From positions 19,034,001 through 19,098,000 of the forward strand of contig CATNEN010000038.1 in NCBI GenBank assembly GCA_950097015.1: a stretch of 64,000 bases of DNA. The letters are read 5' to 3'. The position numbers and the translations under genes are program-made. Origin of the DNA: Macrostomum hystrix (lineage: Eukaryota > Animalia > Platyhelminthes). Below are positions 40,101 to 60,090 of this stretch, piece after piece (the stretch's first letter is position 1; every line of letters starts with the position of its first letter). Under the pieces are notes generated by a model, which saw only the letters and a list, made by a program, of their open reading frames with translations, ran no database searches and had not been told where the DNA came from.

Positions 40101-41399
40101 TCAGCCAGGGATTTCCAAGTGAGCGAGTCATTTGAAAAGAAATCATTTTTTTACAAATCGGTTCAATCTCACCTGGCCGATGAGAACCGGGCAATCGGCC
40201 AGCAAATTCAATAACCCAAAGCTGTTTGTTCTGCACCGATCGTCCAATAGAATAGAGTCTGGTCACATTTGGACAAGCTGCGTGGATTTTCCGCAAGTAG
40301 TTTGTTAGAGCGTCGTAGTGGTGATGTCTGAGGTGTTTGAGATGAAATTCAAGCGTGAAAACAAATTACTATTATACTACTCATCCCTGTTCAACTGGTC
40401 ATTCCTGTTGACCTAAAACATCTGACTTACACAAGAGACTCGCTTGGAACAGCAATGTACTGCTTAAAAACATTTCGTCCTCGATCAGCCAGCATTCGAT
40501 TTGCGAAGCTAACAATGCGGTCTATTGGCGAGGTCTTGCTGATTGGATATTGGTCACCTGACCTGAAATGGTTATCAGTTCGATAATATGATAAAATCAT
40601 CAAGATAAGATTAGGACTATGCTGAAGAGAACTGTCACACTCACTCGCTACTTCTTTTCAGTCTCAGCTTGTCACTGGTGGTCGGCCCAACAGCGGCGGT
40701 GGACCAGCCCCACTCTTCAAAGATAAGTCCGCCTCGAGCTAAATCATCGTTAGTCAAATTTAATTTGAACTGCGATCGCAAATGATTTGTCAAATTAAAC
40801 TTTCGATGCTGAAAACCGCGCGAAAGTTTTAAAGTCTGACTAGTAGCTTGGTAGGCGCCGCAATTGTCTATGGTAAAAATAGCATCAACTGGACAGTTAC
40901 TAGCTGACAGGAAGTTGGACAATCTATCCACAGAATCAAGGCTGTTAACATTATCGCAAACTAGAATTCTGCAAACTCGTTTAGGCTTGAACATATTCGA
41001 ACCATGGACCTCGGTCATGAATAATTGGCTCAATGAATCAATAACTGATTGAGTAGCATCGTGAGATTCTTCAGCTGAAGGCAAAATAAACTCTGCAACA
41101 ATGCCTGTCAATGGCGTCTGGATACTGTTGGCTTCGCTCAGGTCAATTAGTTGCTTAGCAACCGAATTCCATTCCAAACCAGTTGGCGATGCGTAGGTTA
41201 ATAAAAGCCTGGGCTGATGACCGCTCACTGACGATAACTTGTAGACGCTAGTGTTGCCAATGTGCCTAATTTTCAAGCTTAATCCATTGCATCCATTATT
41301 CAATAGCAGCAACAGAAGCAGCAGCAGAAATCTGTATCCTCTTGTGCAGCCATGATTACAACTTAAAACAAAACTATTAGAACACATTAAGAGTCTCAT
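28134..41399 (-). CDS. CPD: Carboxypeptidase D-like (M14B metallocarboxypeptidase) type-I membrane protein
   Basis: Exons at approximately 41399-40645, 40562-40430, 40327-40173, 39581-39257, 38635-38540, 38400-37939, 37510-37133, 36351-35815, ~34950-34860, ~32495-32068, ~31245-30605, ~28770-28442, ~28374-28134. One domain has all catalytic motifs ([56 protein letters not shown]) followed by a transthyretin-like domain ([18 protein letters not shown]). Hydrophobic N-terminus; C-terminal TM plus cytosolic tail. Downstream exon boundaries are approximate. Confidence 0.85.
29280..30595. repeat. 20-bp minisatellite (aaacggattaagaaaagaac) interrupted by a SINE
   Basis: Tandem units on both sides of 30000-30366. 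Confidence 0.93.
30000..30366 (+). mobile_element. tRNA-derived SINE, family 2 (full length)
   Basis: A-box GTGGCAGAGCGG, B-box GTTCGATTCC, (ATT)n tail; four copies in the window. Confidence 0.85.
31342..31812. mobile_element. MITE copy (3'-truncated), homologous to 38707-39137
   Basis: Starts with TACCAAGGGGGAATTCCCC and shares long internal blocks with the 38.7-kb copy; followed by a family-1 SINE. Confidence 0.7.
31826..32030 (-). mobile_element. tRNA-derived SINE, family 1
   Basis: Reverse-complement homologue of 1408-1683 (GGAATCGAACC, CAGTCCATGGACTG). Confidence 0.75.
32600..33000. repeat. 24-bp minisatellite (cactctttgtagactcattcagt)
   Basis: Tandem units. Confidence 0.95.
33620..33760 (+). 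mobile_element. SINE family 2 fragment
   Basis: GAGCTCGATTCCACGGCGAGGCTACATT...GTGTACACTGCCTGACG homologous to the 30000 copy. Confidence 0.7.
34990..35740. repeat. 20-bp minisatellite (tctacctgttagactgggta)
   Basis: Tandem units. Confidence 0.95.
36418..37110. repeat. 24-bp minisatellite (cagttagacatgagcacaataac)
   Basis: Tandem units. Confidence 0.95.
37535..37860. repeat. ~24-bp degenerate minisatellite (cactgatgacccccatagacact)
   Basis: Tandem units. Confidence 0.88.
38707..39137. mobile_element. MITE with TACCAAGGG...CCCTTGGTA termini (possible TA TSD)
   Basis: Imperfect TIRs TACCAAGGGGAATCCCCC / GGGAAATCCTCCCTTGGTA; second copy at 31342. Confidence 0.7.
39640..40100. repeat. Near-perfect ~35-bp minisatellite (gcctaaacattgggaagattctaggcgagggata)
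   Basis: About 12 near-identical units. Confidence 0.95.
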
Positions 41400-41584: not shown

Positions 41585-42190
41585 AATCTACTCTCCCAAA
41601 CTATCAGGCTGGCACATCTACTCTCCCAAACTATCAGACTGGCACAACTACTCTCCCAAACTATCAGACTGGCACATCTACTCTCCCAGTGCATCAGACT
41701 GCACATCTACTCTCCCAGTGCATCAGACTGGCACATCTACTCTCCCAGTGCATCAGACTGGCACATCTACTCTCCCAGTGCATCAGACTGGCACATCTAC
41801 TCTCCCAGTGCATCAGACTGGCACATCTACTCTCCCAGTGCATCAGACTGGCACATCTACTCTCCCAGTGCATCAGACTGGCACATCTACTCTCCCAAAC
41901 TATCAGACTGGCACATCTACTCTCCCAGTGCATCAGACTGCACATCTACTCTCCCAAGCTATCAGACTGCACATCTACTCTCCCAAACTATCAGACTGCC
42001 ATCTACTCTCCCAAACTATCAGACTGGCACATCTACTCTCCCAAACAATCAGACTGCACATCTACTCTCCCAAACTATCAGACTGCACATCTACTCTCCC
42101 AAACTATCAGACCGGCACATCTACTCTCCCAAACTATCAGACTGGCACATCTACTCTCCCAAACTATCAGACTGGCACATCTACTCTCCA
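41585..42190. repeat. 30-bp minisatellite (cacatctactctcccaaactatcagactgg)
   Basis: Tandem units. Confidence 0.95.
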
Positions 42191-43188: not shown

Positions 43189-46100
43189 TCAGTGAGTGAT
43201 CTCGGGCACAGGGTTTTCGTACAACGGATCGAAATGCAGCAGGAGGAAGACAGCCACACCTAGCAATGCCAGCACCAGACCGCAGGTTACCAAAGATGGA
43301 CGGAATCGACTTGGTGCAGCCGCCGGGCCAGCCTGTTGTTGCCTAGCAACATTCGGCGAAGCCGGATTGCCATAGTAACCGCCGCTGCCGCTGATGCCGC
43401 TATCTAGATCCTGATCGTGCAGCGGTCGTCGGCGATAGGTTTCGCGGAAAACCGACCCACCGGCCGGTGTGTTAGCAGCAGCAGCGGCAGCAGCTCCGGG
43501 ATGAATTGGCGTGGAATCGAATCGTCGGCCGCTAGACGGACTGGAAGAGGCTGCAGCAGCTGATGCGACCGCAGCAACCGGGGAGCCGAGCGAGGAGTCG
43601 TGGAAGCCAGGGCTGTCAGCGAGTAAGAAGGCTTTAACATGAGTAAACAGAAATATCTTTTCTAAGTAAAACTTTTCATACGCAATTTTATTATTATTGT
43701 ATTAACAACTTTCATGAAAGCAGGACAATACAAAAGAGTAGTCCTGTAGGATCAAAGAAACTGGACTGTTGGGATCAGAGAAATCCCAACTCTTTCTACT
43801 CTTTCCCCCAGTTCTTCAGGGAACCAAAGCTACTCTTTCCCCCAGTTCTTCAGGGAATCAAAGCTACTCTTTCCCCCAGTTCTTCAGGGAATCAAAGCTA
43901 CTCTTTCCCCCAGTTCTTCAGGGAACCAAAGCCACTCTTTCCCCCAGTTCTTCAGGGAATCAAAGCTACTCTATCCCCCAGTTCTTCAGGGAACCAAAGC
44001 TACTGTTTCCCCCAGTTCTTCAGGGAACCAAAAGCTACTCTTTCCCCCAGTTCTTCAGGGAACCAAAGCTACTGTTTCCCCAAGTTCTTCAGGGAACCAA
44101 AGCTACTCTTTCCCCAGTTCTTCAGGGAACCAAAGCTACTCTTTCCCCCAGTTCTTCAGGGAACCAAAGCTACTCTTTCCCCCAGTTCTTCAGGGAATCA
44201 AAGCTACTCTATCCCCCAGTTCTTCAGGGAATCAAAGCTACTCTTTCCCCCAGTTCTTCAGGGAACCAAAGCCACTCTTTCCCCCAGTTCTTCAGGGAAT
44301 CAAAGCTACTCTATCCCCCAGTTCTTCATGGAACCAAAGCTACTCTTTCCCCCAGTTCTTCAGGGAATCAAAGCTACTGTTTCCCCCAGTTCTTCAGGGA
44401 ACCAAAGCCACTCTTTCCCCCAGTTCTTCAGGAAACCAAAGCTACTCTTTCCCCCAGTTCTTCAGGAAACCAAAGCTACTCTTTCCCCCAGTTCTTCAGG
44501 GAATCAAAGCTACTCTTTCCCCCAGTTCTTCAGGGAATCAAAGCTACTGTTTCCCCCAGTTCTTCAGGAAACCAAAGCTACTGTTTCCCCCAGTTCTTCA
44601 GGAAACCAAAGCCACTCTTTCCCCCAGTTCTTCAGGGAACCAAAGCCACTCTTTCCCCCAGTTCTTCAGGAAACCAAAGCTACTCTTTCCCCCAGTTCTT
44701 CAGGAAACCAAAGCCACTCTTTCCCCCAGTTCTTCATGGAACCAAAGCTACTCTTTCCCCCAGTTCTTCAGGGAATCAAAGCTACTGTTTCCCCCAGTTC
44801 TTCAGGGAACCAAAGCCACTCTTTCCCCCAGTTCTTCAGGAAACCAAAGCTACTCTTTCCCCCAGTTCTTCAGGAAACCAAAGCCACTCTTTCCCCCAGT
44901 TCTTCAGGGAACCAAAGCCACTCTTTCCCCCAGTTCTTCAGGAAACCAAAGCTACTCTTTCCCCAGTTTTTCAGGGCATGAAGTATAGTTTAGCCAGTTC
45001 TCAGTGCACTTTACTCGATATCAGACAAATGCCTCATTACAATTCATATAAAAACCTGCTAAGTTCAATAGCAAGCTTGAAGTCATTCTCGTCATCTAGT
45101 TTGTCATCACTATCGAGTTATTTTTCTATCGCCATTAGAAATGTTTATAAAAATTCAGACGGACGAATAGAAAACGGTGTTTAATAATCATACCTAGTAG
45201 CGAGACGTTTGGACTGACCGTGATCACCATCGTCGCTCTCGCTGCAATTATAAAAAATGTTTGAATTTGAGTTTGAATAATAACGATATCAGACAAATGC
45301 CTCCTAAATTCATTCTTAGGGCCCGCTAGATTTATTAGCGAGTAAAGTCTTTTTTGTCATCATTAGCGAGATATTTGTCATATAAAAATTGTTCTACAGG
45401 GTTGTCAGCAAATTTTTAATATATAGAAAGCCCAAATTTCTTGCTTAAACAGCAAGATGACAGAAAACGACCGGAGCACAGTTGGGCCACCTGTACAGCC
45501 ATTGGCGCAGCTGCAGCTACACAACCGCGAATAACTGTCTACAGCTGTTCAGTCCATGGACAGGGGAAGCCGGCACACACATCTAAATTTCAACCTTAGC
45601 CAATGCTGGTATCCATTTTACAGCTGGCTGAACAGAAAGGCTGTAGGAAATGAGGAATGAATTGTATTGCTCAAGGGCACAAGTAGGCTGAGATTCGAAC
45701 TCACGATCTCTTGCTCAGTCAGAAGCTCTAACCACAAGGCCAGAAGCCTTTCTTGCAAACTCGAGTACATGAAAGCTTAACATTGTTAGATTCTAAGAAG
45801 CATTCAATCATCAAAATGAAATTTCCCTAACGTGAAATAGTTGCAAAATATATACAAAGATACTATTTCGCCATCAGACAAATGCCTCATTTCCATTCAT
45901 GCCCGACAAAAATATATCGCTTTGCAATAACTCTGTCAAGTTCATTCTCGTCATCTATTGTCATCATCAGCGAGATCTCATATAAAAATAATGAAAATAT
46001 CTTCAGATGAAAGCCAGAGTTAACATCCGCCAGCAGCTAAGCAAGCATTGATGTGCTGCAGCGGTGTGCTATAGCCAGCTTGAGCATTGCCATGCCCTTA

Positions 46101-49100
46101 ATCTAGCACCAGTATTAAACTTGACCAGACTCTATCACGAAGTTCTGCGAGAGTACTTCATTGGATGGGTCCTTTGGTCAAGGGATCAAATATGGTGCGA
46201 GAACTTATTGAAGTTTTTTGATTACCTAGATTCTAGGCCTTAGAAACATTTTCGTGACAGTTTAGGGCTGTCGATAAAAATGATTTTATACATATGGAAA
46301 GTAAGAGTATGAAATGTGAATGAGAGACGTGTTTTTTATTTAATTAGGAATGGATATAACTGATCTTCCTATAAGGTATTTTTTCACTTTTAGAGGACCT
46401 TGTTCTTCTTCTTCTTAATATACTAAAAATGAAAATTTATTGCTAAAACTATATTTGCATACAAAAAGTAAAGTTGAGGGGATCTATTCATGTGAATGCA
46501 CTGAAAACTCACTACTATCGTCTTCAAGAACAAGCCTCTCAGACAAATGCCTCATTAAAAGTCATTATAGTATAGACACTAATATTTGTGTCTAAATCAG
46601 ATCGTCATCTAAAATTGTCATCATATGGGCAAGCAGTGCAAAGACGATAGCAGCTGAAATTCTAGAAAATCATTACTTTAACTACCGTTTTAGAACAAGA
46701 AGTTTACACAATTTATTTTTTAGTAAAACTCTTCAACTGACAACCTGTGTTCATAACATCATTTACATATTTAAATAAAGAAAATTTTACTTTACTGCAA
46801 ATAAAACAATTTTTGTACATAACATAACTCGATGTCAGACAAATGCCTCGTTAAAATTCATGTTTTTGGCCTGCTAGAATTGTAGCGAACCCTGTCATTC
46901 TCGTCATCTATTGTCATCATTATCGAGTTAACAAAGTTACTAACAAAAAGCAATTTGTTTTTTGCCAATGTTTTTTTGGCAAAAAACAATTTGCCAACAA
47001 AAAGCGACTGAAAAAATACTCTGAATCACACGAGGGACCAAGTATCATCCAACTTCATAGGTAATTTTCCACTTTCTTGCACCCATGTATCTTCTTAAAT
47101 ATAGTAAACAATTGTACTTCAGTATATAATCTCGCAATCAGACAAATGCCTCGTTAAAATTCATGCCCAGGTTAGTTTTGTTTCACGAAAACTAAATCAA
47201 GGTCATTCTCGTCATCTATTTTGTCATCATCATCGAGATATCATAAGGAAGTGGAACTAATAAAGTTATAAATCTATAAGCCAGAGTTAACATCCGCCAG
47301 CAGCTAAGCAAGCATTGATGTGCTGCAGCGGTGTGCTATAGCCAGCTTGAGCATTGCCATGCCCTTAATCTAGCACCAGTATTAAACTTGACCAGACTCT
47401 ATCACGAAGTTCTGCGAGAGTACTTAATTGGATGGGTCCTTTGGTCAAGGGATCAAATATAGTGCGAAACACAATTTTTCACAGCCTATTCACAGTCATG
47501 GTGTACTATCAGCGGTGCCTCGAATATGCCGATATCTTCCAGTGACGTACGCCAAGTACGGCAAAGCTAACTTTATAATTTTCATGACCCGCATGACCCG
47601 AAACCAACCTGGTTATTTGTTCATTCTTTGTTACATTGTTTCATTTGTTACATAGGTTGATGACCTCTGTTCTCTTGTACATGCCAGATTTGCGCTGTAG
47701 GCAAAGACTATGAATCCTCGATTTCGACCACAGACAACGGAATGAAACAACTCCAATCGATTTCCCCGGAGAGTATGCTTAGAACACATTGAATTGAGGG
47801 AAATCAATTGGACTTAAGGGAATTCATTTTGACTTATCTATGGTCGAGAAGGCTGGTTGGGCCCTCGCTTTCGACTTCAGGTAAACTCCACTTGCACCAA
47901 AAAAGCTCGTATATTGGTCAGCTTATTTTTAGGGAATGGTCTTGTCTATGGTCAAACCGAAGTATCACTGGCCCATTATCTGTATAATGGTTGGTTATTC
48001 CTAAAGTCTCACTTACGAATAACCGCATTGTCGAATTTCAGTGGGGCCAAAGACAAAAAGGGCATCGAAAGGAGAGGGGGTTACCGAGGAGAGAGAGACA
48101 AAAAGACTGACGTGGTTTACTGGAGTTTGGGCCATAGACAACGAAGTTGCAAACAGGCCGGGGGTTAAGAGGGTGGAAAGGAAGGAGATGTGGAGAGAAA
48201 GAGAGAATAAAACGTAAATAGCTACAATCGCTTGACCACGGAGAACCGGACGTCATATCCGATCAACTGGGGCAATCTGCCTGTCGAAAGTTTAGCCAAC
48301 GTATCTAGCAGCGAACTCAATTGGATCCCAAGACTTTCCACATCTCAGAAGGACATGCAGGATAACGAAGACTTTTTGAACTTCTTGCACTTTATTGAGA
48401 GCGGTGATACTGCCGATGATTTGCCTCTGCTACCGGCCGAGGATGATGCTGCAGCTGAAGAGGATGGAGAGAATGAAACTGAGCCGAAACGAGTTCCTTT
48501 GGATATGCAAGAGGCAATGACGAAAGATGAAATAGTGAGCCTACCAACCAAGACGCGAGAGCAGATGATTGCTCATGGTAACGGTTTTGTGCAGTTCCTT
48601 CGCGAACATGGAGCTGCTGTTCAGGAATTGAGTCGTGTTGAGATGTGTGAGTTTCTTAGGTATTACTACTACCAATTGCGTCGCCATGATGGCGGTACAT
48701 ACTTGCCTGCAAGTCTTGTGTGCATCCGCGCCGGGATACAGCGCTTTCTGACTATGGTGGCTGGATTAACGATCAACATTATCGATGGTGAGGAATTCGT
48801 CCTAGCGAATAGAATGCTCCGAATGAAAATCAGGGAATGGCACAACTCCGGCGGTCAGGTTCGATCATATCCGCCAGTCGAGGAGGGTGATATGGAGAAG
48901 CTACGGACGTATTTCGACAGATCAAGTGCAGAGACCACTCAGGATGAGTTTCTATTTCGCGTTATGTACGGCCTAGGAGAACGAGGAAGGGAACATCTGG
49001 AGTCGATTGAATCCAAGAAGTGGTTGGTGAAGCGCGAAGACTCGGATGGAAGACCGTACTACGCATTGCCTGTACTGAATTCCAAAAACAAGTCTGCCGA

Positions 49101-52100
49101 TCCCAATCGAGCCAAGCGTGACATCGACGTAAAGCAGGCGAGAATCTACGATGTTGGAATTGTGGACGACTACATGGCTATATTACCAACGGAGACGAAG
49201 AACGACTCACTGTTTCCCAGGCCACTGAAGAATGCAGGAGGCACCAGACGATTTTGCTCGTAGTAGATACGAGGAATAAATTACCTGAGGACTTTCATGA
49301 AAGCGCTGAGCAAAAAGCGAAGCTTTCTAAGGAATACACCAATCACAGCATTCGGTGAGTCAGTTGGTCGGGGAAGTGCATATGATGTTTTCAACTTGTG
49401 TCTGATTGAGTCTAATTTACAGTTCAATTGCTCAATTGCTCTAGAGTTACCAGAGTGTGTGACCTGGAATCGGCTGGGCATTCGATGAACGATATTATGG
49501 CTATCATGGGTCAAAAGTCCGAGAGCACAGTCCGGCGCTTTCTGGCAGTTAAACGGGACAAGTCCCTGCAACAATGCAGCGATGCAGTGTCGCGTGCGCT
49601 GAACATAGGACAAAGCGCCGCGATCCACGGTCAAGTAACAATGCCTGCTGACATCAGCATCCAGAGCTCCATCGTGCAAGAAGCAGTGAGCGTGTCTGAT
49701 GGTCATCAGATGAACGGTCGGAGTATCTTTATTATGAACAACTGCACTTTCAACAATTGCAATATGTAATGGTCTTCGGCACTATATTGACAATTGCGCC
49801 ATATTGATACTGCACTATTAACTTTCCATAGCGCTCTTTTGTTGTTGGTGTTTGCTGTTTTGTTCTAAAAATAGGCATCCATTATCCCGAGTTAAAAATT
49901 GTTATCCTGAAGTTTAAGTGAAGAAATAAATTGAATGTGCTCAAGGTTTAACCATAGACGATTACATTATCCTACACTGATTATTGACAATGGGCTCGCT
50001 AGCAGGACCATTATATAGATAATGGGCTCGCTAGTATATTAGAACAGCTATATTATACCTTTTGTTCAACTGATTTCGCAAAAAGCCAATTGATTTCCCC
50101 ATTAGATGGTGATAGTATATTTGAAAGAACTAACGCATGAGATTTAGTCTTTGGTCATAATTACTTTCAGACAAATGCCTCATACAGATCAGCTTAGAAA
50201 AGACACTTCAATGTGTCTAAATCAGATCGTCATCTTAATTGTCATCATTTCAATTAATTATTGACGCAAAGACGCTAGCCGTTTTGTACAATATTATCAA
50301 CTTATGAGCTAAAAGCTGACTTTATATGAAGGTCAAAAAATTCAAATGGGCGAATAAAGATGTCGCTGAGTTTATGCACAAAATAACTCGACTTCAGACA
50401 AATGCCTCGATAAAATTCATTCCGACGCCAAGCCAGATGAACTAGCGAGCCAGGTCATTCTCGTCATCTATTTTGTCATCATTATCGAGATTCTATAACG
50501 GAGTACACTGATCGAATCTTTAGGTCTGTGCTCTAGTGCAATTTAGTTTCTTGAATCGCTAAATAATTATCAGTTCTCACAGTACTCAAAGGCGTTAAAC
50601 GAGGATGATATTGATTATTAATCATCATATAAGAGCATCTTTTCATTGATGAGAAAGTTATATGAAAGTCATGAAAATGCTATCGAAATCAGACAAGTAT
50701 GAATCTTGACAAACGTATAAAATGGTCTTGGTCTTTCTCGTCTCGTTTCTCGGCTTGAATATAGTCTTGTTTTTCATTAGCAGCCAGTCGTTGACTCGTA
50801 GTTAGTTGATAAAAACAAGTAATTATGAAAATAACATTAAACGATTATAAAATGTAACAGCTTAACAGTCAGACATATGCCTTATAAACATCATATTAGT
50901 ACAGACATGTTAATATCTGTATCAAATTCAGATTTTCATCTAGAAAATTGTCATCATTTGAGAAAGAGACATAATATGAATAATGTGGTCGGAATTATTT
51001 AACTAGAAACCTGTTTGTAGTTCTCATGATATGAAGATTAAACTAGCTTGCCTCGATTTCACACAAATGCCTCGTTAAATTTCATTCGTAACACCTGCTA
51101 GATTGTTAGCAAGAGCAGATCATTCTCGTTATCTATTTCGTATATCAACGGTATACGATATTCTATCCCGTATATCAACGGCGGCTTTTAATATAGTAAC
51201 TTAGGCGGTCACATTTTTCCCTTCTAAATTTGTAACAATGAAAGTGTTGTTTTAGAATTACAATCGTCTACTGTGATTTTAAAAGTAAGCGTTTTCGCCA
51301 TCAGACAAATGCCTCATTTCAATTCATGCCCGACAAAAATATATCGCTTTGCAATAACTCTGTCAAGTTCATTCTCGTCATCTATTGTCATCATCAGCGA
51401 GATCTCATATAAAAATAATGAAAATATCTTCAGATGAAAGCCAGAATTAACATCCGCCAGCAGCTAAGCAAGCATTGATGTGCTGCAGCGGTGTGCTATA
51501 GCCAGCTTGAGCATTGCCATGCCCTTAATTTAGCACCAGTATTAAACTTGACCAGACTCTATCACACAGTTCTATGAGAGTGCTTCATTGGATGGGTCAT
51601 TTGGCTGAGGGATCAAATCTGTTGTGAGATTATTTATTATAAAAGTTCTTTGATTACCTAAATTCTAGGCCTTAGAAACTATCTTATGACAGTTTAGGTC
51701 TTTCAATAAAAATGATTTCATGCTCATTGAAAGTAAAAGTATGAAATGTGAATGAGAGACGTGTTTTTTATTTAATTAGGAATGGATATAACTGATCTTC
51801 CTATAAGGTATTTTTTCACTTTTAGAGGACCTTGTTCTTCTTCTTTAATATACTAAAAATGAAAATTTATAGCTAAAACTATATTTGCATACAAAAAGTA
51901 AAGTTGAGGGGATTTATTCATGTGAATGCACTGAAAATTCACTACTATCGTCTTCAAGAACAAGCCTCTCAGACAAATGCCTCATTAAAAGTCATTATAG
52001 TATAGACACTAATATTTGTGTCTAAATCAGATCGTCATCTAAAATTGTCATCATATGGGCAAGCAGTGCAAAGACGATAGCAGCTGAAATTCTAGAAAAT

Positions 52101-54959
52101 CATTACTTTAACTACCGTTTTAAAAAAAAGTTTACACAATTTATTTTTTAGTAAAACTCTTCAACTGACTACCTGTGTTCATAACATCATTTACATATTT
52201 AAATAAATAAAAATTTACTTTACTGCAAATAAAACAATTTTTGTACATAACATAACTCGATGTCAGACAAATGCCTCGTTAAAATTCATGTTTTTGGCCT
52301 GCTAGAATTGTAGCGAACCCTGTCATTCTCGTCATCTATTGTCATCATTATCGAGTTAACAAAGTTACCAACAAAAAGCAATTTGTTTTTTGCCAATGTT
52401 TTTTTGGCAAAAAACAATTTGCCAACAAAAAGCGACTGAAAAAATACTCTGAATCACACGAGGGACCAAGTATCATCCAACTTCATAGGTAATTTTCCAC
52501 TTTCTTGCACCCATGTATCTTCTTAAATATAGTAAATAAATGTACTTCAGTATATCATCTCGCAATCAGACAAATGCCTCGTTAAAATTCATGCCCAGGT
52601 TAGTTTTGTTTCACGAAAACTAAATCAAGGTCATTCTCGTCATCTATTTTGTCATCATCATCGAGATATCATAAGGAAGTGGAACTAATAAAGTTATAAA
52701 TCTATAAGCCAGAGTTAACATCCGCCAGCAGCTAAGCAAGCATTGATGTGCTGCAGCGGTGTGCTATAGCCAGCTTGAGCATTGCCATGCCCTTAATCTA
52801 GCACCAGTATTAAACTTGACCAGACTCTATCACGAAGTTCTGCGAGAGTACTTCATTGGATGGGTCCTTTGGTCAAGGGATCAAACATGGTGCGAGATTC
52901 CTAACCTTGAATTGTATTTTAGAGCTATTCATAATTAAAAAGTTTTCATAATATACTGTAGTTATTCTTTTTTTTTTATCATGGTATTTAAGGAATTGGA
53001 CCGTGCTGTTTAATAGTTTAATAGTTTAATAATACACGAAAAATGAACTTCCTTTATGTTTATGTTTATGTTTATCCTTTATGAACACAAAACGAAGACC
53101 ATAGATTAAAAGTTTTTAAGACATGTCTAGTTTCACTTTTAACAAAGACGTCTTTTATCACAAAATTTCAGACAAATGCCTCATAAAGATCAGTTTAGTA
53201 TGGAAATTGCAATATGATTGTCCAAATCAGATCGTCATCTAAAGTTGTCATCATTTAATTTAGTGACAAAAGACAATATTACTTAGCAACAAGTTTTAAA
53301 TACGGCTTGCAATCCCTGGCGCGGCCAGGAACGATCAACCCGCTATGTCGACCGTCTTTTTAAAGACGCGCCAGCACCCAGCCAGGCGGCCGGTGTGAAG
53401 CGTGTTAGACACCTGGCTCTGAAACGCGCGATTTGACACTCCCCCTCTTGGCCATTACGGCTTGGGGCGTAACTATTATTATCACAACTTATTAAAAACG
53501 ACTCGATGTCAGACAAATGCCTCATTACAATTCATGGTTTAAACCCACTAGATAATTAGAGAGTTCAGTTCATTCTCGTCATCTATTTTGTCATCATTAT
53601 CGAGTTTTTATTGAATAATTTGTCCTTGGGCAAAACTATATAACTTTGTATTGTCTTTTTATGCAGCGATAAAATGGGTACCAGCGATTACCCAGTTCAT
53701 GGAAAGAACAGCTGAACGAAGCTTTCTAGAGTCAATCAATTTCGTAATAATTAAGCTTACAAGGAGAGAAAATCATGTATGTTTCGTTGAAACTCACAGG
53801 TAAATCCAACCCCCAAAAAACCACTTAATTTCAGTAATCATACAAAATAGTTGTCTGTCTTTGTCCAGGATAAATCAGACAAATGCGCTATAACGATCAC
53901 TCCTAATATAGATATGTGGGATAAAATTATCAATTACTTGCATTCAGACAATTGCATGAAATATAAAATTTCAGATCTTTAACAAGACATTTAATAATAT
54001 ACAAACGCCAGGGCGCCTTGTTGAAATTCATACTAAGGACAAGCTTTACTCTTAGCAAGTAATGCCAGTCATTCTCGTCATCCTTTTGTTATCATTGTCG
54101 AGACACTATGATATAAAAAATAATTATTTATGGGATAATATTATGTTAGAAATAGATACTGCACTAGAAAGGAGTAAGATTGTAAATGCATTCTATGCAA
54201 TAAGAGTTTACCTCACAAACAGATTTTAAGTAACCGATTTTCTGAATGGCCGCTCCATTTGTTTCAGGCTAATATAAGAAACAACTAAACTATTGAAAGT
54301 GACATTCAATATTTTGCACTACATGTTAACTGTATGAAAAATATGGTAGATATCAGTTTTTGAACACGATTCGGCAGCACAATTATAGGATTGCTATTAA
54401 GACAAATGCCTCATTAAAGATCTTGACATATCTTGACAGATCTTGACAAAGATCGTGACATAAAATAGTCACGAAAAATATTCAATGTCTTTATCAGTTC
54501 GTCATCTAAATTTGTCATCATAATATCATGCTCCTATGGTACATATTCAAGCATACTTTTAAGGCTTAGTGGCGTCACTTTCTAAACAATTAGCAAAATT
54601 TACAATTCTGTTTTCCGCTACAACTTTTTGTTGTAAAAATTGTCAAAACTGAATTTGAAAATCTATCCTTTACTTTTTCCGTCATCCTTCGTGTTCTTAT
54701 ATCAACTACTCAGGATCTTAAGCTAGGTTGATAAATAACATTTTAAAATATATAATTATAAAAGAGTCACAGAAACTAACCCCTCAACTGGATCATTGCT
54801 GCACACTGAGAGAAACTCCTGACCAGATTGTAGCCTATAAAGCTTTCGCCGCATCAGTTGTCGAGTTGTATCAGTCACTGGTGGCACATTGCTGCTACCC
54901 ATATGCAGGGCTAGTTCTTCGCGTAGTTCAACATCTGTCAACTGATTGATTTCATCCAT
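43189..54959 (-). CDS. LEM-domain inner nuclear membrane protein (emerin/LAP2beta/Otefin-like), 216 aa; snoRNA host gene
   Basis: Phase-2 GT-AG exons 54959-54781, 45241-45194, 43612-43189. N-terminal LEM domain MDEINQLTDVELREELALHMGSSNVPPVTDTTRQLMRRKLYRL, low-complexity middle, C-terminal TM (LVTCGLVLALLGVAVFLLL) and short tail (YENPVPEITH). An acceptor at ~54979 implies a further upstream non-coding exon. Confidence 0.85.
43797..44975. repeat. ~37-bp minisatellite (ctactctttcccccagttcttcagggaaccaaag)
   Basis: About 31 units; explains ORFs 43769-45184 and 44328-44981. Confidence 0.95.
45021..45110 (-). ncRNA. C/D snoRNA copy 1 (type A)
   Basis: C GTGATGA, D' ATGA, D CTGA, both guides, perfect 8-bp terminal stem ACTCGATA/TATCGAGT. 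Confidence 0.88.
45289..45363 (-). ncRNA. C/D snoRNA copy 2 (D' guide lost)
   Basis: C and D boxes and D guide present; the AGATGACGA guide is absent. Confidence 0.6.
45505..45745 (-). mobile_element. SINE family 1 (degenerate)
   Basis: GATTCGAACTC head and CAGTCCATGGACAG motif, as in 1408-1683. Confidence 0.65.
45874..45967 (-). ncRNA. C/D snoRNA copy 3 (type A)
   Basis: C/D'/D boxes and both guides intact. Confidence 0.85.
46006..46198 (-). ncRNA. Candidate ~190-nt three-hairpin H/ACA-like RNA, copy 1 of 5
   Basis: 5' hairpin GCACCA/TGGTGC and CTTGACCA/TGGTCAAG; H-box-like AGATTA; small hairpin; 3' hairpin AAGCTGG/CTGGCTT, TAGCA/TGTTA, CCGCTGCAGC/GCTGCTGGCGG. G-U pairs favour the - strand. 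No exact ACA box. Confidence 0.45.
46539..46624 (-). ncRNA. C/D snoRNA copy 4 (type B, D'=CTGA)
   Basis: Both guides, internal TAGACAC/GTGTCTA stem, external stem CTATCGTCTT/AAGACGATAG. Confidence 0.85.
46835..46920 (-). ncRNA. C/D snoRNA copy 5 (type A)
   Basis: Boxes and guides intact; terminal stem TAACTCGAT/ATCGAGTTA. Confidence 0.88.
47138..47230 (-). ncRNA. C/D snoRNA copy 6 (type A)
   Basis: Boxes and guides intact. Confidence 0.85.
47273..47465 (-). ncRNA. Candidate H/ACA-like RNA, copy 2
   Basis: Near-identical to 46006-46198; ATA follows the 3' hairpin. Confidence 0.45.
47498..50111 (+). mobile_element. Crypton-like tyrosine-recombinase transposon (decayed)
   Basis: Bounded by ATGGTG direct repeats (47498-47503, 50106-50111). 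The paralogous empty site at ~57619 has a single ATGGTG. Motif CCAATYGATTTCCC occurs at 47753 and 50086 and inverted at 47798. Encodes a YR/DUF3504-like ORF. Confidence 0.75.
48232..49769 (+). pseudogene. Tyrosine recombinase (Crypton/DUF3504-like) pseudogene with one intron
   Basis: YYYYQLRRHDGGTYLPASLVCIRAGIQRFL and GERGREHL motifs, then TAG TAG at 49261-49266 and a frameshift at ~49311. Correcting it restores KAKLSKEYTNHSIR|GT-intron-AG|VTRVCDLESAGHSMNDIMAIMGQKSESTVRRF, in which the expected His and Tyr appear as Q and F. Confidence 0.75.
50167..50248 (-). ncRNA. C/D snoRNA copy 7 (type B)
   Basis: Boxes and guides intact; long external stem. Confidence 0.85.
50394..50482 (-). ncRNA. C/D snoRNA copy 8 (type A)
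   Basis: Boxes, guides and CTCGA/TCGAG stem. Confidence 0.87.
50869..50957 (-). pseudogene. C/D snoRNA copy 9 (type B, both guides mutated)
   Basis: C and D boxes present; guides are AAGGCATATG and AGATGAAAA. Confidence 0.55.
51059..51140 (-). pseudogene. C/D snoRNA copy 10 (D box mutated, C box lost)
   Basis: Paralogue of 58512-58598; D reads GTGA and the 5' end is replaced. Confidence 0.6.
51301..51394 (-). ncRNA. C/D snoRNA copy 11 (type A)
   Basis: Near-identical to copy 3. Confidence 0.85.
51433..51626 (-). ncRNA. Candidate H/ACA-like RNA, copy 3
   Basis: Homologue of 46006-46198; H-box-like AAATTA. Confidence 0.4.
51969..52054 (-). ncRNA. C/D snoRNA copy 12 (type B)
   Basis: Matches copy 4. 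Confidence 0.85.
52263..52348 (-). ncRNA. C/D snoRNA copy 13 (type A)
   Basis: Matches copy 5. Confidence 0.87.
52566..52658 (-). ncRNA. C/D snoRNA copy 14 (type A)
   Basis: Matches copy 6. Confidence 0.85.
52701..52893 (-). ncRNA. Candidate H/ACA-like RNA, copy 4
   Basis: Homologue of 46006-46198; AGATTA H-like box; ATA after the 3' hairpin. Confidence 0.45.
53168..53254 (-). ncRNA. C/D snoRNA copy 15 (type B)
   Basis: Boxes and guides intact; unique internal sequence; external stem GTCTTTT..TCAC / GTGA..AAAAGAC. Confidence 0.85.
53509..53597 (-). ncRNA. C/D snoRNA copy 16 (type A)
   Basis: Boxes, guides and ACTCGAT/ATCGAGT stem. Confidence 0.87.
53875..54100 (-). pseudogene. Two decayed C/D snoRNA copies (17, 18)
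   Basis: TCAGACAAATGC remnant at 53875; TCATTCTCGTCATC guide with mutated C box at ~54069-54095. Confidence 0.5.
54398..54521 (-). pseudogene. C/D snoRNA copy 19 (type B, D box mutated to CTTA, expanded loop)
   Basis: Both guides and C box present; internal GATCTTGACA triplication. Confidence 0.6.
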
Positions 54960-55374
54960 ATCACTGGTTGCTAAGGAGCTGAAAACCAAAAATAACTTTA
55001 TGATATCAAATTTTACTAAAATTGCAAATTTACTTTCAGGTATTGTCTGTAATTACAGTAAATCTAAATCCAAGCAAAATGATAAAGCAGTCAAACAAGG
55101 ATTTACAAAAAATGCACAATGCAATAAATTTAATGACAATAAAAAGCCCTATTATTAAAATAATAAATTATTATCCTACTATACTATGGCTTGAGTTTAT
55201 ACTATGTCTTGACTATACTAAATGTTGTGGCGCTCTACCGTTTAGAACCATTTGACGAAATTTTATCGTTTTTTCAACAAAAAGTGCCAAATGATCCAAG
55301 GATTAGACTGATCCAATTTTATCATTCTGTCTCAATGCTAAGGGAATTAAATCTAATAATGTGAAAAAAAATTA

Positions 55375-56150
55375 AGCATGCATCAATAATATCAAGGTGG
55401 AAGCATGAATTATCGATTGTAAAACATGACTTATCGAGAGGGTAGCATGAATTATCAAGGGCGAAGCATGAGTTATCGATGGGGAGCATGAATTATCGAT
55501 TGTAAAACATGACTTATCGAGAGGGTAGCATGAATTATCAAGGGCGAAGCATGAGTTATCGATGGGAAGCATGAATTATCGACAAACTTGCATGATTTAT
55601 CGGCGGGAGGGTTGAATAAATTATATAGAGGGGTAGCATGTATTAACGAGGGGAAGCATGAATTAACGTGGTAAATGTATGAATTATCAACGGGGTAGCC
55701 TTAATTATCGTGATAAAAGCATAAATTAAATGGGTAGCATAAATTATTAAGCGGGCAGCAAGATTTGTACAGTGATAGCATGATATAACAAAGTGGTAGC
55801 ATGAATTATTGAGGGGATAGCATAGATTATCGAAGAGAAAGCATGAAATATCGACGATGTGCCGATTCGATAATTATTAAAGAAAAAACAATTATTATCA
55901 ATTAAGAAGCATGAATTATCGAGGGAAAAGAGTTAAATATCGAGGAGCTAGGATGAATTATTGAGGGGGAAGCCTGAATTATCGAGGTGGAAGCATAACT
56001 TATTATGGGGGTAGAATGATTTATCAACTGGCTTGCATAAATTATCTAGGGGATAGCATTATTTATCAAAAGGGTTAAAGTGTATTATCGAAAGGGTTGC
56101 ATTATTTACCGAGGGGTCCCATGGCTTATCGAGTGGCAGCATGATATACT
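55375..56150. repeat. Degenerate ~21-bp tandem repeat (agcatgaattatcgaggggg); related tract at ~57120-57420
   Basis: Recurring GCATGAATTATC. Confidence 0.8.
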
Positions 56151-57677
56151 GAGTAATCTTCTATCATTAACGGTTAAAAGCATAAGTTCAAGTTTTTTAT
56201 CATTCTTTTTTTAGATTTTTTGGGTACAACTAACTGTTATTGGTAAGAGCTATTGATTGACTGTCAAAGCAAATAGCTACTTAGATCTTTTGCTTTATTG
56301 CTCTTCTCGCTCTGAGGAAAAAAATTGAGTGCAGCAGCAAGTTTAATTCGATACAAAACTGAGTAAAGAATTTTTTAGCATTTCTGTCTGCATTTTTAGA
56401 TTCGAAAATATAAGAAAAGACTTTGAGTATATAAGAAAAGCTATTAGCATAGTTCATTTTAAATTGTAACTTCTTTAAGCATTATTGCAAGCAGTATTCA
56501 ATAGGATTAAAAAATGAAGATATAAAAAAGTTATATATACAACAATTTTTCAGAACAGCTGCAAGTGTAATTAGATTCAGAACTAGAAAAAAATTGTTGA
56601 GCATAGCTAAACTCGGTATTATTTTTTATTTCAACTTTTCTTCAAACATTTCTTTAAGCAGTTTTGATTAAAAAATTAATGAAACTGTTCGAGCATACCT
56701 AACTGTTAGCATTCTTTTATTATTAAAACAAAAGAAAATTGTTTCGAGTGTAGCTGTAATCATTATTAGATTCAAAACTAAGGCAAATATTTTAATGCTG
56801 GCTAATAGCATTACTCTAAAAAAGCTTAGGGGTTTTTCATGTAGGGAAGCAATCACAGTTTTTATGCATTTTGAAAGCATAATAAAATAATTCGAATGAG
56901 AACATGAAACTTAGGAATATAGTGCTAGATTTCAATGGACAGCAGCATGGTATATCAAATAATTAGCATGTAATTTGTGGAGAAAAGCATTTGATACGCA
57001 GTGAATATCTTGATTTCTTGAAAGGATTGCATAAGAATTCCAGGAGAAAGAATGAGATTTTTAGGCAATTGCATAATGGTTTCAGGGAATTTTTTAAGAC
57101 TATAGACTGACTTTTTAAATAGGGTAGCTTGATTTATCAAAGGGGTAGCCTGAATTATTAAGGAGAAAGCATAAATTGTCATGGGGAAGCATGAAATGAT
57201 GAGGGAAAATAATGAAGAATAAAATCAGGAAGAAAGCATGACATATCAAGGGGAGCATGAACTATCAAGGGGGAAGCATAAACTATTGTTATGAAAACAT
57301 GACTTATTAAGAGTGTAGCATGAATTATTGAGGAGGTGGCATGATTTATCGAGGTATAGCCCTGGTTTTGGGGATAGCATAATTTACTAAGGGGTAGAAT
57401 AAGTTATTGAAGGGGAAACACGATTTCTTGCTTAAAACATGAGGGAGAAATACTATTATTACACAGCCTATTGATGTCTACAACAAACAAAAATATTATT
57501 CTTTACTGAAGGCTCTTATAACTGAGAAATGGTACAGTTTACTCATATAACAATACTTGCATAGGCGAACAGCTCAAGCTCTATTCCTATACAGTGCTTG
57601 CTCTATTGGCTCTACTACATGGTGATAGTATTTGAAAGAACTAATGCACAAGATTTAGTCTTTGGTCATAATTACTT

Positions 57678-57759
57678 TCAGACAAATGCCTCATACAGAT
57701 CAGCTTAGAAAAGACACTTCAATGTGTCTAAATCAGATCGTCATCTTAATTGTCATCAT
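57678..57759 (-). ncRNA. C/D snoRNA copy 20 (type B)
   Basis: Matches copy 7. Confidence 0.85.
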
Positions 57760-57905
57760 TTCAATTAATTATTGACGCAAAGACGCTAGCCGTTTTGTAC
57801 AATATTATCAACTTATGAGCTAAAAGCTGACTTTTTATGAAAGCCCTAAAATTTATAATTGGCAAATAAAGATGTCGCTGAGCTTATACACAAAATAACT
57901 CAACT

Positions 57906-57994
57906 TCAGACAAATGCCTTGATAAAATTCATTCCAACGCCAAGCCAGATAAAATAGCAAGCCAGGTCATTCTCGTCATCTATTTGGTCATCAT
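57906..57994 (-). ncRNA. C/D snoRNA copy 21 (type A)
   Basis: Paralogue of copy 8; boxes intact. Confidence 0.8.
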
Positions 57995-58338
57995 TATCGA
58001 GATTCTATAAAAGTACACTGATCAAATATTTAGGTGGAATTAGTGGAATGCTCTAGTGGAATTAGGTATCTCTAAATGATAAGAAGCTTAATAAGATAAT
58101 TATCATTGATCTTCTTAAAAGCAGATTTTGTCATTGATGAAAAAGTTATATAAATGTCAAAATAAAATTAGTATCCAAATCTGACTAACAGAAAACTGAA
58201 ATACATTCATTTTTTCTTAGTCATTCTGGTCATAGATTGAATATAGTCTTTGATTTTTTATAATAACTAGTCATAGACTCGTAGTTTACTAAAACAAGAA
58301 ATAATGAAAATAACTTAAACACATATCAAATGGAAGAG

Positions 58339-58419
58339 TCAGACAAATGCCTTACTAACCTCATATTAGTGTAGGCACATTAATATCCATATCAAATTCA
58401 GATACAGAATTATCATCAT
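58339..58419 (-). ncRNA. C/D snoRNA copy 22 (D' guide lost)
   Basis: C, D' and D boxes and the AGGCATTTG guide are present. Confidence 0.55.
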
Positions 58420-58511
58420 TTGATTAAGACATAATATCAAAAATGGGGTCAGTTTTATTTAACTAGAAGTATGTTTGTATGATATAAAGAAAAAACAAGC
58501 TTACCTTGACT

Positions 58512-58598
58512 TCAGACAAATGCCTTGTTAAATTTCATTTGTAACACCTGCTAGATTGTTAGCAAGAGTAGATCATTCTCGTCATCTATTGTCATCAT
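58512..58598 (-). ncRNA. C/D snoRNA copy 23 (type A)
   Basis: Boxes and guides present. Confidence 0.8.
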
Positions 58599-58635
58599 CA
58601 GCGAGATCTCATATAAAACTACTGAAAATATCTGC

Positions 58636-58797
58636 AGATGAAAGCCAGAATTAACGGCCGCTAGCAGCTAAGCAAGCATCTGCATTGCTGTTCCCTTGAT
58701 CTAGCACAAGAATTCAACTTGACCAGACTCTATCACACAGTTCTATGAGAGTGCTTCATTGGATGGGTCATTTGGCTGAGGGATCAAATCTGTTGTG
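58636..58797 (-). ncRNA. Candidate H/ACA-like RNA, copy 5 (internal deletion)
   Basis: Basal stem changed to CACAA/TTGTG (pairing retained); H-like AGATCA; 3' hairpin partly deleted. Confidence 0.35.
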
Positions 58798-59142
58798 AGA
58801 TTATTTATTATAAAAGTTCTTTGATTACCTAAATTCTAGGCCTTAGAAACTATCTTATGACAGTTTAGGGCTTTCAATAAAAATGATTTCATGCTCATTG
58901 AAAGTAAAAGTATGAAATGTGAATGAGAGACGTGTTTTTTATTTAATTAGGAATGGATATAACTGATCTTCCTATAAGGTATTTTTTCACTTTTGAGAGG
59001 ACCTTGTTCTTCTTCTTCTTAATATACTAAAAATGAAAATTTATTGCTAAAACTATATTTGCATACAAAAAGTAAAGTTGAGGGGATTTATTCATGTGAA
59101 TGCACTGAGAACTCACTACTATCGTCTTCAACAACAAGCCTC

Positions 59143-59228
59143 TCAGACAAATGCCTCATTAAAAGTCATTATAGTATAGACACTAATATTTGTGTCTAAA
59201 TCAGATCGTCATCTAAAATTGTCATCAT
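59143..59228 (-). ncRNA. C/D snoRNA copy 24 (type B)
   Basis: Matches copies 4 and 12. Confidence 0.85.
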
Positions 59229-59441
59229 ATGGGCAAGCAGTGCAAAGATGATAGCAGCTGAAATTCTAGAAAATCATTACTTTAACTACCATTTTAGAAC
59301 AAAAAGTTTACATAATAATGTATTTTTTAGTAAAAATCTTAAACTGACAACCTGTGTTCATAACATCATTTACATATTTAAATAAAGAAAATTTTACTTT
59401 ACTGTGAAAAAAAAATTTTTTGTACATAACATAACTCAATG

Positions 59442-59527
59442 TCAGACAAATGCCTCATTAAAATTCATGTGTTTGGCCTGCTAGAATTGTAGCGAACCCT
59501 GTCATTCACGTCATCTATTGTCATCAT
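59442..59527 (-). ncRNA. C/D snoRNA copy 25 (type A)
   Basis: Paralogue of copies 5 and 13; one substitution in the D' guide. Confidence 0.8.
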
Positions 59528-59710
59528 TATCGAGTTAACAAAGTTACCAAGTTCACATTTGCCAACAAAAAGTGACTGTTAAGTAAGAATACTCTGAATC
59601 ACACGAGGGACCAAGTATCATCCAACTTCATAGGTAATTTTCTACTTTCTTGTACCCATGTATCTTCTAAAATATAGTAAATAAATGAACTACAGTATAT
59701 AATCTCGCAA

Positions 59711-59803
59711 TCAGACAAATGCCTCGTTTAATTTCATGCCCAGGTTAGTTTTGTTTCACAAAAACTAAATCAAGGTCATTCTCGTCATCTATTTTGTCAT
59801 CAT
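59711..59803 (-). ncRNA. C/D snoRNA copy 26 (type A)
   Basis: Paralogue of copies 6 and 14. Confidence 0.85.
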
Positions 59804-59834
59804 CATCGAGATATCATAAGGAAGTGGAACTAAT

Positions 59835-60090
59835 GAATGTGTTTAACAGATTTCTAAATGTGTGTAACAGTTTTATAAATCTTTTTAATATTTTTCTGAA
59901 TGTGTTTAAAAGGTTTCAAAAAGGTTTTAATAGTTTTCTAAATGTGTTGAACAGTTTTCTAAATTTGTTTAACAGCTTTCTAAATGTGTCTATTAATTGC
60001 TTTTTTTAAATGCATCTAAAACTTTAAAATATGTTGAACAGTTAATATTGCAGTCTAATAGTTTTCAAAGGAGTCTAACAGTTTTCCAAT
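59835..60090. repeat. Degenerate 21-bp AT-rich tandem repeat (aaatgtgtttaacagttttct)
   Basis: Tandem units. Confidence 0.75.

Follow-up and report, generated by a model that had tools for sequence, protein, structure and literature searches.

The evidence presented here supports the view that a LEM-domain gene of the flatworm Macrostomum hystrix carries on its own strand an array of genes for double-guide small nucleolar RNAs (snoRNAs) of the box C/D class, 25 copies in all, aimed at one segment of the large-subunit (LSU) ribosomal RNA (rRNA). The array occupies positions 45014-59810, minus strand, of the window, by which we mean the whole 64-kb stretch of DNA that was analysed (contig CATNEN010000038.1, positions 19,034,001 to 19,098,000); coordinates are positions in this window unless labelled otherwise. 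It is the sole genomic source of a guide of the U15/SNORD15 type. We consider it fairly probable (roughly 65%) that this is the only U15-type locus of the genome, expanded to 25 sense copies within the LEM transcription unit, from which the RNAs would be released as predicted methylation guides; we infer their transcription, processing route and methylations from the DNA. The RNA itself is an additional member of a very well-known family. The arrangement is a new variation on known ones, with 25 copies of a canonical rRNA guide, in two register-shifted subfamilies, in a conserved protein-coding host that is their sole genomic source, and so many rRNA-guide copies in the long introns of an animal protein-coding gene are unusual.

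Array copies and their predicted rRNA targets

The motif composed of box D and the D guide, searched in its reverse-complemented form on the plus strand, gave 24 matches with at most two mismatches where 0.24 were expected, and shuffled sequence never gave more than two. A sequence model trained on 21 aligned array copies recognised 25 at E<1e-6, every one of them in minus-strand orientation and within 45014-59810, and four additional marginal fragments. An earlier inspection of the letters without database searches (the sequence-only reading) had counted about 26 copies; the number is nearly right, but it overstates independent amplification, as the array comprises 12 lineages, a unit of eight snoRNAs repeated about 2.5 times and five pseudogenes.

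When the whole genome was searched (220,453,370 bases in 42 contigs), 25 of 25 model matches fell inside the LEM-gene locus, as did 21 of 21 exact matches to the D guide with box D in an exhaustive pattern search, and the sole-source status of the array follows from this. The pattern of box C and guide 1 had three matches outside the locus: one was a 20-bp minisatellite and not a snoRNA, one was a chance match with no box D, and the third was a GAC/GAT-rich run that we counted as chance, judging from the 27-nt match alone. No other snoRNA family was found in the window under strict criteria, and genome-wide searches with Rfam SNORD14 and SNORD18 gave no matches here and none in the control genomes either.

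Read on the minus strand, each copy runs through box C (RUGAUGA), guide 1, box D', a degenerate C', guide 2 and box D. This order, and the placement of every element on the host strand (25/25 copies), agree with what the sequence-only reading had proposed. Box C towards the 5' end, together with a CUGA box D towards the 3' end, was present in 21 of the 25 copies, five decayed copies failing in this respect, and both boxes are invariant columns in the alignment of the copies.

Both guides lead to one unique site in the genome's own 28S rRNA, again as expected from the earlier reading. The 20-nt target occurs once in the LSU rRNA, at 2600-2619 (LSU positions follow the Rfam-delimited numbering of the genome's own rDNA). 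In a strict complementarity scan, the D guide of all types formed a perfect Watson-Crick duplex of 11-12 bp, and the fifth position from box D is A2604, the third A of CCAAAU. The second guide divides the copies into two types. In type A (13 copies), guide 1 is followed by an AUGA-type D' box, and the same fifth-position counting from AUGA gives G2611, the G of CUCGU. Type B (eight copies) has a canonical CUGA D' box one nucleotide nearer the guide, and therefore its predicted target in the complementarity scan is U2612, adjacent to G2611, and not G2611 itself. The shift is also visible against the snR75 consensus, along which a type B copy (B-4) aligns with a single-nucleotide deletion directly before CUGA. 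The guides thus show at least 10 nt of complementarity ending beside box D or D' and a target at the fifth nucleotide, as a box C/D guide does.

In yeast, Am2280 and Am2281 are made by snR13 and Gm2288 by snR75 (PMC4174444), and in human 28S rRNA, A3764 and G3771 both fall to a single RNA, SNORD15A, through its D and its D' guide (PMC5027482). The predicted type A sites correspond to yeast Am2281 and Gm2288 and to human A3764 and G3771, bearing out the site assignment of the sequence-only reading; the A and G sites are well-known methylations of H70/H71. For type B, the A site is matched and the D' register predicts the U beside the G. Human SNORD15A/B has the same D target (third A of CCAAAU) and D' target (CUCGU) as type A. 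Human U15 is about 146 nt long and has two copies, one per intron of RPS3, whereas the array RNAs are 82-96 nt long, number 25 and have a LEM host. Yeast snR13 and snR75 address the same rRNA segment and sites, but there the two guides reside on two separate, independently transcribed RNAs and not on one RNA as in the array.

A comparison with Rfam had been proposed with the sequence-only reading. The best matches of the array copies all lay below threshold and belonged to the SNORD15/snR75 group: Tetrahymena TtnuCD10 (RF02287; 32 bits vs 85), Plasmodium snoR21 (RF01864; 27 bits vs 90), snR75 (RF01185; 26 bits vs a 40-bit cut-off), plant SNOR75, SNORD15 (RF00067, clan CL00045; 17-21 bits vs a 75-bit cut-off) and Drosophila Me28S-Am2589. 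TtnuCD10 and snoR21 carry the same double guide in one RNA, with an AUGA-type D' after GAUGACGAGA, which indicates that the design is ancient; their loops are longer than those of the array RNAs and no array has been described for them. In addition, three unrelated public contigs each contain one type A-like snoRNA (L018:52-150, L019:365-461 and L020:1162-1241) with the exact type A guide and box pattern, and the AUGA-type D' design is therefore widespread outside flatworms. Because human SNORD15A, TtnuCD10 and snoR21 pair the same two guides, the ancestral design of U15 already has a double guide aimed at one segment of the rRNA, and this is not a peculiarity of the array; the double guide that the sequence-only reading had singled out is present but not special to this locus. 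Judged by its guides and boxes, type A is the flatworm counterpart of U15, and type B, judged by its register, is a derived variant.

The host gene and the arrangement of copies in its introns

A minus-strand open reading frame (ORF) at 54756-54989 encodes a LEM domain (PF03020; 34.8 bits vs a cut-off of 24, E=1.3e-8), and a strong splice acceptor is located 19 nt upstream of its ATG. A three-exon coding model (54959-54781, 45241-45194 and 43612-43192), whose reading frame was checked by translating the joined exons, yields a LEM protein of 216 aa that has a membrane anchor at its C-terminus. Exon 1 of this model, which contains the LEM domain, spans 54781-54978 (its acceptor precedes 54978, the ATG is at 54959 and the donor follows 54781), exon 2 is only 48 nt long (45194-45241), and the last coding exon (43189-43612) encodes an Ala/Gly-rich linker and a C-terminal transmembrane tail up to the stop codon. 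Compared exon by exon with a 207-aa LEM protein of Macrostomum lignano, exon 1 was 80% and exon 3 was 62% identical, and the C-terminal hydrophobic tail is conserved. On this similarity the host gene, a gene for a tail-anchored protein of the nuclear envelope, is the orthologue of the M. lignano gene, and the LEM-domain host named by the sequence-only reading holds.

The copies are distributed as seven upstream of LEM exon 1, 17 in intron 1 (9,539 nt, from the exon 1 donor at 54780 to the exon 2 acceptor at 45242) and one in intron 2 (1,581 nt), which also contains a 34-bp minisatellite; the earlier reading had given seven, about 18 and one. This assignment to introns depends on the homology-supported gene model and is to be taken as predicted. 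The published M. hystrix assembly, made from PacBio reads of an inbred line, comprises ~220 Mb in 42 contigs; its introns average 692 nt in length, and 20% of the genes are trans-spliced to a spliced leader (PMC10468722).

The sequence-only reading had likened the organisation to the mammalian SNORD115/116 arrays. To compare the two layouts within one genome, we used as a control an array on the same chromosome (L024; C38:6337500-6347300, minus strand), which holds 11 box C/D snoRNA copies with a D guide that points to G560 of the small-subunit rRNA, and applied a single splice-site score to both loci. In the control, conserved micro-exons of 51-65 nt, flanked by ttttag| and |gtaag, separate the copies, and five of eight spacers scored above the shuffled 95th percentile. 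In the LEM array, none of the 22 spacers did so, and two of them (89 and 101 nt) had no micro-exon candidate. Canonical GTRAG donors are almost absent from the array, acceptors after box D were not enriched (7/25 copies vs 17% expected from random anchors), and no spacer block is conserved among the old lineages except a ~185-nt element without splice-like borders. The control array is apparently non-coding, whereas the LEM array occupies long introns in a protein-coding gene that is conserved. Because micro-exons were detected in the control and none between the LEM-array copies, a true many-per-intron cluster is favoured over an exon-intron repeat of the SNORD115/116 kind, and the likeness drawn earlier does not extend to the organisation.

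The opposite arrangement, one snoRNA per intron, would require a non-coding or alternative isoform of the host with weak, unconserved micro-exons, resembling UHG/GAS5 or SNORD116, and trimming that depends on splicing. The control array has the look of such a locus in this genome, most LEM-array spacers (145-570 nt) would be long enough for it, several copies have T-rich AG sites 38-47 nt after box D, and the copy beside the real exon 2 sits 47 nt upstream of its acceptor. Moreover, sites as weak as those of exon 2 would escape the splice scan. Against these points stand the spacer scores, the scarcity of donors, the acceptor counts without enrichment, the two shortest spacers without a candidate and the lack of conserved spacer blocks described above, and we regard the one-per-intron arrangement as unlikely.

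With the many-per-intron cluster as the preferred layout, the array RNAs may be produced as follows. The copies would be co-transcribed with the LEM pre-mRNA, the seven upstream ones lying in a 5' intron or an outron of the transcript. Box C/D core proteins would package the snoRNAs co-transcriptionally and nucleases would release them. As exons between the copies are absent, freeing the inner ones would take endonucleolytic cleavage within the spacers, in the manner of the intronic clusters of plants and Drosophila; without such cuts, snoRNA-capped long RNAs would accumulate (PMC11028025). The mature RNAs, ~82-96 nt in length, would guide fibrillarin to LSU A2604 via the D guide in all types, while the D' guide would direct methylation of G2611 in type A and, as predicted from its register, of the adjacent U2612 in type B. 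The stronger proposal that an animal frees up to 17 canonical rRNA guides from one long intron of a protein-coding gene endonucleolytically and independently of splicing, in a manner otherwise known from plants and yeast, and that a one-nucleotide deletion within the array gave rise to type B, which adds a lineage-specific Um, is a tentative one, and we would sooner doubt it than rely on it.

Duplication history and constraint

In the order of the host strand, the array begins with block III (57629-59840), the second copy of a higher-order unit with one fusion. It comprises A-1 (59711-59806; intact, 80.6 bits in the model, 6-bp terminal stem), A-2 (59442-59527; one mismatch in the D' guide, GACGUG, and an intact D guide, seen with the model and the alignment), B-1 (59143-59228; intact), a chimeric type A copy (58512-58598), a decayed copy of the B-5 lineage that has lost its D' guide (B-5', 58339-58422; 25.6 bits), A-4 (57906-57994; D guide cut to 9 bp, AAGGC) and B-2 (57678-57759; intact). 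Satellites and LEM exon 1 follow. Beyond exon 1 come B-3 (54398-54521), a probable pseudogene with box D changed to CUUA and a long insert, a decayed type A-like copy whose D guide is destroyed (54015-54102; 32.1 bits), and two intact single copies, A-5 (53509-53597) and B-4 (53168-53254).

Next is block II (50118-52897, minus strand), with A-1 (52566-52661), A-2 (52263-52348), B-1 (51969-52054), A-6 (51301-51394), A-3 (51059-51141), B-5 (50869-50957), A-4 (50394-50482) and B-2 (50167-50248). These are intact apart from A-3, a pseudogene that has lost box C and reads GUGA at box D, and B-5, which is decaying with both guides mutated. A transposon insertion separates this block from block I (45866-47467), a partial copy that retains the first four snoRNAs, A-1 (47138-47233), A-2 (46835-46920), B-1 (46539-46624) and A-6 (45874-45967), all intact. 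Near the end of the array is a single-guide copy (45289-45366), which has lost the D' guide and kept a 10-bp D guide; from the end of its box D it is 47 nt to the exon 2 acceptor. Exon 2 follows, and then A-7 (45021-45110), an intact copy with GUGAUGA as box C and the sole one in intron 2. The model and the rRNA complementarity scan together identified B-1 in all three blocks, A-1 and A-2 in blocks I and II and A-4 in block II; the model and the stem test identified A-5, A-7 and A-6 of block II; and the model identified A-6 of block I, A-3, B-2 of blocks II and III and A-4 of block III.

The unit of eight snoRNAs is ~2.7 kb long and is present in ~2.5 copies that are 81-99% identical. In the chimeric copy, recognised in the three-block alignment and the stem test, the 5' half of A-6 passes, at a junction inside the conserved D' guide, into the 3' half of A-3; its D guide is shortened (AAGGC) and its terminal stem was lost because the two halves were fused. 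This is a direct signature of unequal recombination between neighbouring copies. Growth of the array took two steps, in which old tandem duplications gave rise to 12 lineages with types A and B interleaved, and the eight-snoRNA unit was later segmentally duplicated ~2.5 times with unequal recombination between the copies. The transposon insertion in intron 1, between blocks I and II, is a 343-aa ORF on the plus strand (48232-49263). It matches no Pfam family but has at least 119 matches genome-wide, several of them 96-97% identical and intact, which shows that the ORF is a transposable element; its protein is that of a young transposable element inserted in the array intron.

Among the 25 copies, 16 (10 of type A and 6 of type B) are intact throughout, three have a weakened guide or stem, one has lost its D' guide, and five are pseudogenes in which box C or box D is gone or the guides are mutated. 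The 21 two-guide copies fall into 12 old lineages, seven of type A and five of type B. Type A copies were 55-80% identical to one another and type B copies mostly 69-78% (the decayed B-3 ~45-49%); copies of different type shared less than 53% identity. Compared across 11 representatives of the lineages, boxes C and D and both guides were 95-97% identical, whereas the D'-C' loop was 27% identical and is essentially randomised. The contrast noted in the sequence-only reading between conserved boxes and guides and diverged loops is therefore borne out in numbers, and it argues for long-term selection on many separate copies.

Terminal stems give a similar picture. A stem of at least 5 bp was found in 15 of 21 copies compared with 15% of shuffles. 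Stems of 6-9 bp close 12 of the 13 type A copies, as the sequence-only reading would have it, and those of type B are weaker (3-6 bp). The type A stems are preserved through wobble pairs and compensatory changes, for example CUCGAU/AUCGAG vs UCGC/GCGA, the latter in A-6 of block II. In the core common to the three blocks, 6 of 268 snoRNA columns and 89 of 944 spacer columns were variable (p=2.8e-5), so that snoRNA bodies are ~4-fold less variable than spacers in the duplicated core. This three-block test replaced a substitution-rate test on pairs of blocks, which was dropped because non-homologous ends and patchy divergence partly confounded it; the result suggests constraint and is supportive, not clean.

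Amplification could instead have been mostly neutral, with one or a few copies, for instance those nearest the exons, being functional and the rest decaying by-products of unequal crossing-over and segmental duplication. The impaired or decayed copies, the chimeric copy and the truncated block, and the recent age of the block duplications, which have diverged by 1-10%, would fit such a history, and the patchwork of identity points to gene conversion, a process able to imitate constraint. However, old lineages hold boxes and guides at 95-97% identity against 27% in the loops, terminal stems have been kept through compensatory changes, and the snoRNA bodies vary 4-fold less than the spacers around them. 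We hold mostly neutral amplification to be improbable.

A GC-richer element of ~185 nt accompanies the snoRNAs in five copies that are 81-99% identical and occur at this locus only (46020-46230, 47287-47467, 51447-51660, 52715-52897 and 58667-58831, all minus strand). Every time it is placed ~50 nt upstream of A-1 or A-6, at the head of three to five consecutive snoRNAs, and it is predicted to fold well, with an energy of -67.7 kcal/mol (z=-3.5). It is not recognisable as an H/ACA or other guide RNA, with no Rfam match and no rRNA complementarity of 10 nt or more, nor as an exon, as it is without splice-like borders, nor as a promoter of the kind found upstream of the genome's U1 gene, to which it is not similar. 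The element may serve as a promoter or in processing, or may itself be a further RNA.

If it were a promoter, the snoRNAs might be transcribed from their own intronic start sites as polycistronic units separate from the LEM gene. The locus-specific occurrence of the element and its constant position at the head of three to five snoRNAs favour such units, but no promoter motif was found, individual copies share no upstream motif, and all copies lie on the host strand, as co-transcription predicts. Independent transcription thus seems quite unlikely to us. An assembly artefact, in which a single real unit was collapsed or expanded to give the three blocks, is hardly credible, because the blocks, 90-99% identical as they are, differ by many fixed substitutions, indels, one fusion and one truncation, are separated by unique sequence (the transposon ORF, the LEM exon and satellites) and lie in a genome whose statistics match those of a published assembly made from PacBio reads of an inbred line (PMC10468722). 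DNA reads (~0.23x) over 54000-59990 (5,991 nt) gave short contigs only, with cross-mapping between paralogous blocks.

Several observations nevertheless count against an expanded, co-transcribed and functional U15 locus as we propose it. No Rfam family was matched by the array copies at the gathering score. The seven upstream copies may belong to the LEM transcript, a placement drawn from the acceptor 19 nt before the ATG and from nothing else. The real exon 2 scores ~17-18 in the splice scan, below the shuffled 95th percentile of 20.2, and the scan has limited power for weak sites. The standard animal route consists of debranching and exonucleolytic trimming, and if 17 copies share one intron, this route frees the outermost copies only; either there is an unproven endonucleolytic step or many copies are poorly expressed. 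Divergence from block to block is patchy, which suggests gene conversion and leaves the three-block rate test partly confounded. Finally, 9 of the 25 copies are impaired or decayed, and selection does not maintain every copy.

Comparison with other arrays and neighbouring features

Large tandem repeats of box C/D snoRNAs have been reviewed as eutherian-specific, orphan and imprinted, with the remark that understudied genomes might hold others; SNORD115 and SNORD116, like SNORD113/114, occur as tens of same-strand tandem copies with subfamilies, non-allelic recombination and decayed members (PMC11028025). The LEM array is like SNORD115/116 in having tens of tandem same-strand copies, subfamilies, and recombinant and decayed members. 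In contrast, the guides of SNORD115/116 are orphan and lie one per intron of a repeated exon-intron unit in an imprinted, non-coding host, whereas the LEM array has a canonical rRNA target, a protein-coding host and no detectable exons between the copies.

In this last respect it comes closer to intronic clusters known from rice and Drosophila, which, as cited in a published account, hold several snoRNA genes per intron on the host strand (PMC2780460). Intron 1 of the LEM gene, with 17 snoRNA genes on the host strand, has well over the two per intron that make an intronic cluster. To our knowledge, 17 copies of a single family in one intron exceed the intronic clusters described so far.

A flatworm array of an ordinary, ancient rRNA guide extends the eutherian-only picture of large C/D repeats. 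It also fills a gap in annotation, as snoRNAs are not mentioned in the text of the M. hystrix genome paper (PMC10468722). The locus raises the questions of in what way an animal processes many snoRNAs out of one intron, what sets snoRNA dosage when the only U15 source is a 25-copy array, and whether a one-nucleotide shift of register in a duplicated guide causes a further residue to be methylated at a site that is functionally sensitive. When Gm2288 is lost in yeast, fitness and 60S stability are reduced (PMC4174444). If the type B prediction is true, a Um beside a universally conserved Gm at the base of helix 71 would be a new rRNA modification gained through tandem duplication, and the type B modification could make ribosomes heterogeneous.

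On the downstream side, the next gene on the same strand (40066-41399, minus strand) has a signal-peptide-like first exon (40641-41399) and an exon for an M14 zinc-carboxypeptidase (Pfam E=1.1e-5), and it therefore sets the 3' limit of the LEM gene. Satellite repeats are frequent around the array. They include the minisatellite of intron 2 (34 bp x 35, 43796-44976), a degenerate 21-bp repeat with an 83-bp higher-order period between block III and exon 1 (55390-57400), a minisatellite upstream of block III (21 bp x 7, 59836-59989) and another downstream of the LEM gene (30 bp x 20, 41586-42189). The spacer after A-6 contains, in block I only, a tRNA-like stretch (45690-45780, minus strand) with a T-arm-like GGTTCGAATC motif; ARAGORN made no call in it, and it is probably a short interspersed element (SINE) or a tRNA-derived fragment. 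Elsewhere in the genome, the U1 small nuclear RNA gene whose upstream region served for comparison above is full-length (151.7 bits; L015:9068-9230 on C15, minus strand) and is located in the intergenic spacer of an 11.6-kb rDNA repeat, where it shares the strand of the rRNA genes.

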